A DNA stretch of 63,122 bases, counting the filler, from Bigelowiella natans CCMP2755 (taxonomy: Eukaryota; Protista; Cercozoa), in assembly GCA_000320545.1 (NCBI GenBank). It is 8 parts of 8 records of this genome, joined end to end, with 100 filler letters (N's around TTAATTAATTAA, not from the genome) between each part and the next. Parts side by side here need not be neighbours in the genome. Positions count along the whole stretch, not along the records: positions 58,115 to 63,122 come from ADNK01002613.1; 7 more parts are not named here. One strand, 5' to 3'. The position numbers and the translations under genes are program-made. The notes beneath the pieces were generated by a model. The model saw only the letters and a list, made by a program, of their open reading frames with translations. It was not told where the DNA came from and did not search any database. Numbering within the stretch: the first letter of the stretch is position 1; each line of letters opens with the position of its first letter. Shown piece by piece: positions 58,115 through 63,122 of the stretch.

Positions 58115-58141
58115 CCGCAGCATCTCTACACCGACCTGCAG

Positions 58142-58794
58142 ATGATCCTACACCTCACTCCCGAATTTCCTCTCACTGACCCTCCGCTCCCTCACACCGC
58201 TGCTTCCCTGCATGCGGCCGTTGAACTTATCCTCTCTGGGCGCCTCCCCACCCCCATCCAGCAGAAGCTCCTCAACTTTCTACTCTCGGCGACAGGGGAG
58301 GAGGAGGAGGAGGAGGAGGAGGAGGAGGAGGAGGAAGGGGGAGACGGGCATGTGACTGGGGCGGGTACTGAGTCAAATCACAGCCCCTCGAATGAGGCAA
58401 ATGATCACACACCAACTATAACTGCCGCTATCAGCGATGAGAAGCTCAAGCATGGTGGTGACAGCAGCAGCAGCAGCAGCAGCAGTATGGGCAGGGGGGG
58501 AGGGGGAGAGACCGTCGAAGAGCCTAATGTACATGATAAGAGCGTCGGATTAGTTGGTAATGTTAGTGGAGAAGTAACCAAACAAGGAAGGGCCAATAAT
58601 CATCTCGATAGACACGATCATAACCCCAACCATGTCAAGAAGCCTAACGGAGGAAAAGGGAACATCTGCGAAAGCAGCATGGAGAAGAAGAGTAACCGTA
58701 CCATGCCAAGTAGCATAGTAGGAATGCCTAACCGCACCAGTGAAAAGGAGGAGGAGGAGATTTTTGGGAGGACAAATAATAGGGCCAACGGCAT

Positions 58795-58827
<33 letters not shown>

Positions 58828-59404
58828 TGAGTTTCGCCATAACGATGATAACGACAACAGAAGCCAGAAGAGTAATGCCCCTGGAATCATTGACACCAAA
58901 GAGGGTGAGAGGGGGGGGGGTGCCAAGAAGATTAGAAACGGCAGCACCAACAGCATGAGAGGCAGCATTGAAAATTCAAAGAACCCAGGCCGTCGTCGCC
59001 GTCGCTACACCGCCATTGCAGTCGGTGGGGGGGGTGGAGCAAGGGCCCCATTACGGAGGAATTCTGTTCAAAGCGCGTCCACTACACAGCTTCATCGACT
59101 ATCGACAGACATCGACCCTCTAGAGGCCTTTACACGCCTGGCAAGAATGCGCAGAAAGAGTCAGGTTCAGCAAAGGAGCAAGATGCCCAAGAACTACGCA
59201 TCTGCCACCACCAGCACCAGCAGTGATAGTAACAGTAGCACCGTAGACAGCAGCTTTCGTAATAGGCGTGAGTCTCGTTCCTCTGAGCGGAGCAAGAGTA
59301 GCACGCGGCCTCCGCCATTAACCGTGGCCATCGACGGTGGCGATGGTGGTAGAGAAAATGGCAGCACAGCCAGCAGCCCTACTCAATCTAGTCAATCACC
59401 GTAA
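58142..59404 (+). CDS. Large exon of an unknown protein: short helical segment plus long S/E/N-rich disordered region
   Basis: 420-codon open frame. It ends at CC|GTAAG, which is either a splice donor or a TAA stop. Confidence 0.6.
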
Positions 59405-59429
59405 GTGTGGTTCCTGCTGGGTTGTAGCC

Positions 59430-59617
59430 TCCATCCTTAACAACCGCATTGCAACCATGTTGAACGTGGCAGGAACAAACTGACATCCACACGCGCCACA
59501 TTTGGATCACTTTGCATGCATGGTGTTTGCTGTGGCACAAACACAAATCACACGTGCTCACATGCACTGCATCATCTAGTCATGGATGGCATTGCTAATG
59601 CCAATGTGCATGTCTAG

Positions 59618-59653
<36 letters not shown>

Positions 59654-60335
59654 AATGTGATTCAGTGCATCGAAGTTGTTGTTGCAGATGATGCAATCAG
59701 ATCGCCACAAACGCTGGAACATGCATGCATGCCTCTGCAACAAAAACTGCATGCCACAAGCTTGTCAGACGGCCAAGACACGCGGGTGCGACACGCATGC
59801 ACGCGTGTGTGGTGTCAGCCGCCACCCAGCTCAAGTGGCGGAGTTTTGCAATTGTGATTTCGTGACGATGCTGGGATGGCGGCCGATCGATGTGCCCCAC
59901 TTTGGCTGTTGGTGCCTGCTGGCCTGTCGCGTGAGGGTGCACTTCAAGCGCGTGAGCGTGCACTTGAAGCTTGACGTTGCGCTGAGTGCAGTGTCAAGGC
60001 CATTCGGTGGATTGGTGAGTGAAGCTGTTTTCCAGTGGTCCAGGCTAGCCAGCTAGCTGCGCGAAGAGCAGCACAAGAAGAAGAAGAAGCAAGAAGAAGA
60101 AGAAGTGTTGAAGAATTTGATGAAAAGCTCGGAGGGACACAGAACAAAAAAGGAATGAATGAATGAATGAATGAAATGATTCCAATTGTGCAGCAGAGTG
60201 GATCACAGGATCACACTGACTTGCCCTCCTCGACCAGCAAGATCACCGATCAAGGAAAGTCGAAACATTGTTTTCACATCTTGTCGACCGATTTGCCGAT
60301 TTTGCTGCCAATTCAGCCGAGAAAATTAGCAGTGA
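59430..60335. other. TpA-depleted decayed tract, probable hypermutated repeat or element relic
   Basis: Only 7 TpA in about 900 bp, all YTAR. His/Cys-rich, Tyr-free short ORFs. 21-bp tandem duplication at about 59928-59969. Confidence 0.6.
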
Positions 60336-61146
60336 ACTATTTCGCCTTCTTCAGAATTCACAGTCAATCTTAGTACAGAGACATGCCTTAGCATTGATTT
60401 CGTGATCAAAACCGCCTCGCGACTTCTCCAATTAAAGAGTTGAAAAACCAAGAGAAAAAAAGAAAGAATAACGGTAAAACATTTGGGAATCTCAGTGAAA
60501 TTTTCAGCTGCGACATTTGAGAAGAGATTGTCGCAGAGGATATTATCGCCTGGATAATATACCTGAGATCTCCCGGAGATTTTGTGCAACTGGCCATTTC
60601 GCCTAAGAAAAAATCATTCTGTCCCACCCCTCACCTCAAACGGCCCAGAATGGTACACCCCCCCCCTAAAAATTAGTGCATGATTTGGGAGATGAATTGA
60701 GGGAGGGGCTAATAGTTTGGCTTTATTCGTTATCAATCAAACGCTGGTTTAGAATTTGGATTGCGATTCCTACGCTCTCCCCTCGCCTGAGTCGCCTAAC
60801 GTCTACGTCTACGTCGACGTGGCGTTAACATGTAAACCAGCGGTGCGGTTAAACTACTGCCTGTGATCGGTTTCGGATGTAAATATCGGCGAAGCCACTG
60901 GAAGTCCATTACTTGTACTTTCAGAGGGGGGAGATTTCGCGAAAGATTATATGCACTGCAGAGTTCATAAAATAGCTTAGCTAAGAAACACCAATTTTCC
61001 TTACGGAAGAGGGAAGAGGCTGATGGGGAGAATTGAGGCTAAATCTTTTGAAATTTTTTGACGCTGAGCACATAGCTTACTATAAATATGTACACAACAA
61101 AGTGGTCGACCGGGGTTATACAGTCGCTGATACGATAATTTGCCGA

Positions 61147-62041
61147 TTAGATTACTGCTCTTCGGGCGGCGCTAGTCCTTCCTCTCGTAGTAGCTGCGAT
61201 CTCATCTTCACAGCGCGTGAATGTCCACACCGCTACACGGTCTGGAACAAAATGGTCCTCTCCGATTGTACAACAGGTATCTTTGATTACTATCTTTAAA
61301 TAAATGCATAAAAGTGTCGGGGGATGCCTCATGTAGGCGTGGTGGAATAATAACTGCGAACAAATATCCCAAGAGGCCATGCCTGTATCATCCCCATCAT
61401 TATTGCCTATCATCGTCTCAAGCTCCATGATTATCTTCTTGGTTCGGTGCTTTCAGCATGGGCAAAACATGCGTCGGAATCTCCGTCGGTCCCTCTCAAA
61501 AGCTCTCGCTACTACCAAAAGTAAGAAGTGTAGAAGCAGTACTACAGTCATAAGCAGCAAAAGCTGCGCGTCGCTTTTATTTCCTGAGTTTACCTCTTCC
61601 TCTCTCACCCCTCCTCGCCCTTTAATCGCTCCCTTTCTCTCCCATTCCTTGCTAAGAAGCATACAGTTGATTTTGATGTTGCCTGCACACAGACAAGCAG
61701 CCTGGTAGCTGGCAGATCTCTGATCGTAGTAGTACAAGTAGCAGTAGCAATTCCCGACTTGTTAAGAGCTCAAGCGCCATTGCCACGCCGCCCACCAACG
61801 CTGCCGTGCAGGGAGCAAACCTGAAGTAATATGGGGAAGGGGGGCAGGGAACATATCAGCATGGCGTTGAGCAATCGAGCGGCAAAACAACGGAGGGCAA
61901 AGATGAGAGAAAGAGTAAAGCGAAGGAGGAGAGAGCTTTAGGGCGTGAAAGAAACAGAGAGGGGGGGGGGGGGGGAGTGAGGGGGGAAGGTGCTAGGAAT
62001 AATTTTGAATATAATATTGTCTTGATTTATCCAACGTGGCC

Positions 62042-62095
<54 letters not shown>

Positions 62096-62832
62096 TTGTC
62101 CTTGTATATTGATAGGGTGTTCGGCTATGATGTCACGAAGTTTGGTGTATACTTTATGGCCCACGGTACTACTCGCACATGTGCTCGCATACACCTCACA
62201 GCAGACGTGTGCACACATAAAAAAAGATGCCTTGAATGGACTGCACTGCAGCTGATATAATGATAATATGAGAAGAAACTAACAATTCAACATGCTCTTT
62301 CCCTCCCCCTCCCCAACTTTTAACAGCTCTGGTGTACGGGATTCTTTGGTATCTCTCTCTGATTAAATGGGCTGTTCTCTCCTTCATTGATAAAGGTGTG
62401 CTTGGGGTGATCAACATTGGTATATACCTGCAGCAGAACCCCCCCCCCCCTTCACTCTGGTCGCTCCCTTCTGAAGTTGATGCTTCTTGTTGGGATATAT
62501 CAACGATAAGGCCGCGTCGTATTTTCCCCCATCCTTAATTCCAAAAGGAATCTCCACAACACCACGCAGTAGAGGGCTATTTTTTGAACGGTTCTTTGTT
62601 GTTGTTGTTGTTGTGGTTGTTGTCATCGTCGTCATCGTGGTGCATAGATCACCATAATATGGACCGTTCATCTCTCCTATGGGCGACACGCACACTCAAG
62701 GTAGGTAGTAGGAGGAGAAGGAGGCATTTATCTCTTCCTCTTTTTGCCTTTTGGCGAAATTGACAGTATTCTTGATGGAAACACGTGAGGATAACATTGA
62801 GTATCACTAGACGTACATCACGCACATTAGAA

Positions 62833-62869
<37 letters not shown>

Positions 62870-62977
62870 GTTGCATAGTCCACCGGCTGCATGCCGATTA
62901 TCGAGGGCTGGGAAAATCTCCCAAAGGAGCATGGCGGCACCATGGAGGATGACGTACTACACATATCTTCTTCTCCC

Positions 62978-63011
<34 letters not shown>

Positions 63012-63100
63012 CTGAGCAGTACAAAATGCCATACGGAGGATATCCTTCAACACGAGATGATAATACGAATGAACAGAACCAAGATGGACGACAAATCTGT
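61147..63100 (-). CDS. Probable multi-exon gene of unknown function
   Basis: Short unique blocks with AG acceptors separated by microsatellite introns. No consistent frame or family established. Confidence 0.25.
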
Positions 63101-63122
63101 TCTCATCTTCGTCCCCCCCCCC

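Follow-up and report, generated by a model that had tools for sequence, protein, structure and literature searches.

The stretch of DNA analysed here (the window; 63,122 nucleotides of joined genomic parts from Bigelowiella natans CCMP2755) ends in a piece of about 5 kb, positions 58115 to 63122 from record ADNK01002613.1, to which we aligned public RNA runs. The piece carries the 3' part of one gene (gene 1) and, downstream of it, a second gene (gene 2), and between and across them lies a tract (59430-60335) that is nearly free of the dinucleotide TpA. Table 1 lists the features together with their TpA content.

Table 1. Features of the piece 58115-63122, with the ratio of observed to expected TpA where counted
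Feature	Position	Strand	Basis	TpA observed/expected
Gene 1 coding region, 3' part	58115-59404	+	Frame open from the edge of the piece, RNA contigs; stop codon TAA at 59402-59404	0.84
Gene 1 3'UTR, 85 nt	59405-59489	+	Poly(A) site at about 59489; the TAY/RTA-free interval starts inside it, at 59427	0.4
TAY/RTA-free interval, 911 bp	59427-60337	none	TpA context counts	
Intergenic spacer, 367 bp	59490-59856	none	No RNA contig over 59507-59856	0.15
Gene 2 exon 1, 796 nt	59857-60652	+	Spliced RNA contig; 5' leader of about 793 nt	
Gene 2 leader, first 479 nt	59857-60335	+		0.10
Gene 2 leader, rest	60336-60652	+		0.49
Gene 2 intron 1	60653-61150	+	GT..AG; joint seen in two runs	1.0 (normal, though adjoining the island)
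Gene 2 exons	61151-61276, 61457-61520, 61693-61825, about 62117-62165	+	RNA joints, contig pieces; GT..AG introns	
Gene 2 exons, further	62327-about 62394, 62646-62698, 62877-62954	+	RNA joints, contig pieces; GT..AG introns	

The part of gene 1 present here encodes the C-terminal tail, of low complexity, of a VPS9-domain protein. Residues 1-110 match the proteins P0001, P0002 and P0003, in which the Pfam VPS9 domain stops at the point where the piece starts. Poly(A) tails follow 59489 in four raw RNA reads, and the ends of RNA contigs lie at 59497 and 59506. Within the spacer, RNA depth is 0 in the bin 59618-59784. The spliced RNA contig of gene 2 covers 59857-60061 and 60184-60651, and the 122-nt gap in its coverage, which is contiguous in contig numbering, corresponds to a region of AAG and GAAT repeats. 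The leader has stops in all frames and then an ATG at 60650-60652, the last three bases of exon 1. This ATG is the likely start codon of gene 2, and its frame continues in exon 2 with a signal-peptide-like sequence; the model of gene 2 was built by exon-by-exon translation and phase arithmetic only. Many upstream ATGs occur in the leader, including those of a (GAAT)6 array.

RNA supports gene 2 from 59857 onwards, where an assembled contig with 25 unmatched letters begins; this is not a start defined by capped reads. Relative to it the tract runs from about -430 to +480. In the RNA contigs of two runs, 25 and 49 unmatched letters stand upstream of 59857 and 59883, respectively, and no AG acceptor precedes either position. 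The 25-mer from the 5' end of the gene 2 RNA contig occurs nowhere in the window. These letters could stem from an assembly chimera, another allele, or an upstream or trans-spliced exon. The five well-mapped introns of gene 2 (from 60653, 61277, 61521, 61826 and 62166) begin GTACAC, GTATCT, GTAAGA, GTAATA and GTACTA, in that order. The 5' splice-site consensus of this organism may include GTA.

Extent and context of the TpA depletion

The tract measures 906 bp, is 50% G+C by count, and holds seven TpA where about 50-56 are expected, a ratio of 0.12. An earlier note on this DNA had reported that all seven lie in the context YTAR, and our recount agrees with it exactly: CTAG four times and TTAA, CTAA and TTAG once each, with the T at 59438, 59577, 59596, 59615, 60046, 60054 and 60327. 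Twelve of the 16 NTAN contexts are at zero, and the longest TA-free runs measure 431 bp (59615-60046) and 273 bp (60054-60327). The interval free of TAY and RTA slightly exceeds the tract, the nearest TpA in another context being GTAG at 59425 on the left and CTAT at 60338 on the right. Outside the tract, YTAR makes up only 37 of the 225 TpA. Perfect palindromes around CTAG are centred on three of the seven surviving TpA (59609-59622, 14 nt; 60043-60050, 8 nt; 60050-60059, 10 nt).

Sequencing or assembly error does not explain the composition. RNA contigs from independent studies show zero differences from the genome over 59015-59506 and 59857-60651, and fourteen DNA runs contain 97% of the words sampled from 59300-60500, so that the tract is not an artefact of basecalling or assembly.

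Expected counts for the tract were taken from the TpA density of the remaining piece. By this measure YTAR is at background density (seven observed, 8.2 expected; P=0.43), whereas TpA in every other context is absent (none observed, 41.5 expected; Poisson P about 1e-18). The earlier note had held that its proposal would fall if YTAR were depleted as much as TAY, and this is not what the counts show. On its face the depletion is all-or-none by context, with YTAR untouched and other TpA erased. In 1000 second-order Markov simulations of the 5-kb piece, every 906-bp window held at least 22 TpA, and the maximum TA-free gap in the same simulations (same size, n=1000) was 228 bp. That the depletion is real and statistically extreme is therefore beyond doubt. 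The nominal probability that all seven TpA would be YTAR is 3e-6 to 6e-5, rising to 1e-4 to 1e-3 when two adjacent CTAG are counted as one event. Since there are seven sites, two of them adjacent, and the pattern was spotted post hoc in a very large scan, the YTAR specificity is less secure than the depletion itself, and given the size of the scan it could be partly luck.

The two borders differ (Table 1). The left one is sharp and lies about 25 bp past the stop codon of gene 1. Pairs of serine codons, AGT-AGC, are kept in the last 200 bp of the gene 1 coding region, where a change of GTA to GCA would be synonymous, and thus protein constraint does not set this border. On the right side the depletion declines gradually over some 300 bp and leaves a weaker shoulder that reaches about +800.

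Composition and sequence motifs

Inside the tract, TG (1.97), CA (1.71) and GC (1.41) are in excess, and CG stands at 0.71. In the remainder of the piece CG is likewise 0.71 and TA 0.83, so that CpG is equal inside and outside. The ApA/TpT ratio of the tract is normal (1.12). Pyrimidine-purine steps in one-sided contexts are as frequent in the tract (120 per kb) as in the flank (119 per kb), and between the two TpA falls by 29 per kb and CpG by 9 per kb, and TpG plus CpA rise by 40 per kb. G+C increases by 5 points, from 0.455 in the right flank to 0.50. We simulated the corresponding change by applying TAY to TGY and RTA to RCA to flank sequence. The converted flank reaches a G+C of 0.505 (tract 0.500), with TpA at 0.17-0.23, TG and CA at about 1.45 (tract 1.7-2.0) and TGCA at 15-16 per kb (tract 22), and the 4-mer correlation of flank with tract rises from 0.08-0.17 before conversion to 0.58-0.66 after it. 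Since conversion reproduces the G+C and much of the k-mer spectrum, replacement of TpA by TpG or CpA is largely a fair description of the tract. The tract is nevertheless not just flank sequence plus transitions, because its purine/pyrimidine 6-mer spectrum is deviant as well, correlating with those of the flanks at r of only 0.02-0.58 where the flanks correlate with each other at 0.58-0.89. The contexts of CpG, inspected as a possible footprint of double conversion in the form of an RCGY excess, gave no significant signal (P=0.11). A polarity of divergent transcription, CpA-rich on the left and TpG-rich on the right, was also sought in the tract, where no consistent switch was seen.

Several motifs that the earlier note had listed are indeed abundant, and most of their excess follows from the dinucleotides. 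The tract has 20 TGCA (3.5 expected) and 12 CATG; a hand calculation from dinucleotide ratios predicts about 17 and about 12. Dinucleotide biases thus account nearly fully for both, and we reject a motif-driven explanation. On the promoter side, TGCATGCA occurs twice, at 59513 and 59722 (0.3 expected), modestly above first-order expectation, and five copies of GCATGC in the spacer (1.5 expected in a first-order hand calculation) are likewise a modest excess. In Plasmodium, TGCATGCA, GTGCAC and CACACA are ApiAP2 motifs (PMC11417369). The long TG repeat pointed out in the earlier note is a (TG)16 at 59621-59652 in the spacer; a (TG)9, however, lies in flank sequence of normal TpA. An (AAG)10, the (GAAT)6 and a 21-mer that occurs twice are also present. 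Tandem arrays make up about 146 of the 906 bp (about 16%), and the remainder is complex sequence; we accordingly reject the idea that the tract is mainly microsatellite. Alternating purine-pyrimidine runs of at least 6 nt occupy a share of 0.20 of the tract and of 0.13 and 0.05 of the flanks. Between 59488 and 59811 there are eight alternating runs of at least 9 nt, the longest of 37 nt, none of which contains TpA. TpA is also zero in the one-sided contexts outside the alternating runs, and the complex sequence of 59830-60335 holds three TpA against about 30 expected.

The minus-strand reading frame at 59697-59963 has 11 His and no Tyr, as the earlier note had remarked. Its suggestion that the frame looks more protein-like with His restored to Tyr, however, is a by-product of composition, since CA is abundant and the lack of TAY on both strands leaves every frame without Tyr codons. 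We rejected a minus-strand gene at this place: the frame has no Pfam match and the mapped transcripts are all on the plus strand. A Pfam search of the reading frames of the tract as a whole gave no match, and an Rfam search gave nothing above any gathering score. A scan for bacterial promoters and terminators also returned nothing, and such models have no bearing on a eukaryote. We also rejected a foldback or hairpin element, because the alignment of its two arms is within the range of shuffled sequence; the fold z-score of the tract, -3.0, is explained by the complementarity of its CA-rich and TG-rich parts.

Known systems and possible origins

Among known processes that leave a dinucleotide signature, fungal RIP turns CpA into TpA in duplicated DNA, raising TpA/ApT and lowering (CpA+TpG)/(ApC+GpT). 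The tract resembles its products in being bounded, strand-symmetric and changed in composition by dinucleotide context, but the direction is the opposite, as the earlier note had stated: TpA/ApT is 7/59 (0.12) and (CpA+TpG)/(ApC+GpT) is 208/116 (1.79), and the tract is expressed and, as far as seen, unique. Vertebrate CpG islands, which keep CpG by escaping methylation-driven decay, are likewise centred on the 5' end of a transcript, measure about 1 kb and are set off strongly from their flanks by a single self-complementary dinucleotide. Here, in contrast, CpG is the same on both sides of the borders, TpA has been lost, and G+C is only 5 points up. During somatic hypermutation, DNA polymerase eta acts at WA motifs, where TpA is the favoured site of A-to-G change, over a zone that depends on the distance to the promoter. 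Both the apparent A-to-G change at TpA and a zone set by promoter distance recall the tract; eta is, however, strand-biased and also hits ApA, which is normal here. To our knowledge such mutagenesis is limited to vertebrate B cells, downstream of AID, and never saturates. The usual depletion of TpA in genomes and of UpA in mRNA concerns the same dinucleotide, and UTR sequence is involved here too; it amounts to ratios of about 0.7-0.8 and is not context-selective, whereas the tract, its apparently untranscribed spacer included, stands at 0.12 with most NTAN contexts empty. Hyper-editing by ADAR shares the apparent A-to-G direction. ADAR acts on RNA, however, with a strand bias and a preference for UAG, and in the tract UAG survives and RNA equals DNA where RNA contigs align. 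A search of the literature found no description of TpA-free promoter islands.

We observed directly what the tract is composed of, where it ends and how it lies relative to the transcripts; from these observations we infer a direction of change and a cause. The reading that we prefer, and to which we give about an even chance of being right, is that the tract is a native, single-copy, non-coding island centred on a promoter, and that a regional, promoter-proximal process, not repeat-directed hypermutation, is its cause. Within such an island, TpA with a 5' purine or a 3' pyrimidine would have been replaced by TpG or CpA, leaving YTAR at its normal density. We lean slightly towards a persistent, context-dependent T:A-to-C:G transition bias in open or unwound promoter DNA, since 3'UTR, spacer and leader are affected alike and no single signal fits all the contexts. 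A close second would be selection against TpA-containing signals in regulatory DNA of an organism whose population is very large. To remove all of about 41 sites, a bias would have to be very strong or selection strong; so complete a loss is hard for either, and we know of no precedent for such a bias, or such selection, in the TAY/RTA context. The promoter-island reading is drawn from one locus.

If efficient weak selection acted alone, purging TpA-containing signals from the promoter and the long leader, the candidates would include TATA-like elements, cryptic GTA 5' splice sites, polyadenylation or PUF-type UGUA/AUA elements and UpA cleavage sites. We consider this possible but on the unlikely side. 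The island does coincide with regulatory and UTR sequence next to an intron of normal content, and general under-representation of TpA, reportedly described by Karlin and Burge, is well known. As at least five mapped introns start with GTA, the same triplet within the leader exon of 793 nt could be used as a cryptic donor. No single signal, however, spans TAC, TAT, GTA and ATA on both strands and yet spares YTAR; the untranscribed spacer is depleted as much as the leader, and neither the gene 1 coding region nor the 3'UTR of a relative strongly avoids TpA. Ordinary heterogeneity, in which a TpA-free vocabulary of microsatellites, Z-DNA-prone runs and palindromes of the TGCATGCA/GTGCAC type fills the tract and the YTAR pattern is chance, seems to us a rather improbable account. 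The arrays, the larger share of alternating runs and the copies of TGCATGCA and GCATGC on the promoter side speak for it, and the look-elsewhere argument covers the YTAR pattern; but the arrays are too small a part of the tract, TpA is as scarce in its complex half and in one-sided contexts away from alternating runs, and dinucleotide bias explains most of the motif excess.

The earlier note had proposed a dedicated system, either a TadA/ADAT-like deaminase or TAY-specific adenine methylation with mutagenic decay, that changes A to G in TAY on both strands, possibly as a RIP-like defence of the genome. What it had described, namely the absence of TAY and RTA, YTAR at background and the surplus of TpG and CpA, has stood, and the clean trinucleotide specificity, the balance of TpA loss against TpG/CpA gain with a rise in G+C, and the sharp left border speak for such a system. 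Bacterial TadA, moreover, acts on A34 in a U-A-C context, which makes a preference for TAY not absurd. The interpretation as a defence against repeats has fared less well. As far as seen the tract is unique, with no second copy within the 5-kb piece and an RNA depth across it at the level of single transcripts; it is expressed and centred on a transcript 5' end, all of which argues against a RIP-like process aimed at repeats. Its sequence is UTR and spacer belonging to two expressed genes, not a repeat or mobile element; saturation of every site is unlike known stochastic hypermutation, and the purine/pyrimidine pattern departs from that of the flanks. We therefore regard a dedicated system of this kind as very unlikely. 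In a further reading, which we consider unlikely, this protist lineage would have a sequence-specific T:A-to-C:G process on DNA at RTA/TAY, through an enzyme or a modified base, that acts in bounded, chromatin-defined tracts such as promoter-proximal DNA and leaves YTAR-sparing islands recurring across the genome. Least probable is foreign or inserted DNA of viral, bacterial or mobile-element origin from a donor without TAY, an origin the earlier note had named as fatal to its proposal. The composition is sharply unlike both flanks; native spliced and polyadenylated transcripts, however, run across both borders, so that the tract is not detectably foreign, and searches found no similarity in plasmids, phages or viral contigs, no Pfam domain, and no terminal or long inverted repeats in the tract.

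The significance of the promoter-centred island hinges wholly on its recurrence genome-wide. Should the signature recur at many sites, it would point to a new context-specific process of mutation or repair, or to a new type of promoter island, marked by the loss of TpA and not by retained CpG, and either outcome would be relevant to mutation spectra, DNA modification and protist promoter architecture. A tract that occurs only once would be a curiosity of composition.

Homologues of gene 1 and other features of the piece

A profile-free search with gene 1 gave three distant homologues of 46-52% identity, among them one from the chlorarachniophyte Amorphochlora amoebiformis (52%) and another from a marine protist transcriptome. 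When gene 1 peptides were used to scan metagenomes, no relative turned up. The loci of the homologues were rejected as comparators because they are too different, that of Amorphochlora being 25% G+C and the other two belonging to a compact genome of about 55% G+C. In the orthologous transcript of a relative (L004), the 3'UTR is not TpA-poor, which indicates that the loss of TpA belongs to the present locus and not to gene 1 function. The 5'UTR of this VPS9 transcript (L004 1-136) is 66% G+C and TpA-poor, and its first 200 nt hold one TpA, which is not YTAR. The introns of the Amorphochlora homologue are extremely AT-rich, and the ratio of observed to expected TpA at its locus is 1.7; its exon and 5' region (L001 9836-10045) have many homopolymer runs of G or C.

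The B. natans piece, too, is rich in homopolymers of 8-14 G or C (58897-58905, 59025-59032, 61961-61975, 62441-62451 and 63113-63122). One of them falls in a block at 61955-62096 in which a G-rich homopolymer run is followed by a (TC)16 and a (TG)9. This block has weak, sub-threshold matches to miRNA hairpins in Rfam, and its depth of 377 in one RNA assembly shows that it recurs in many transcripts.
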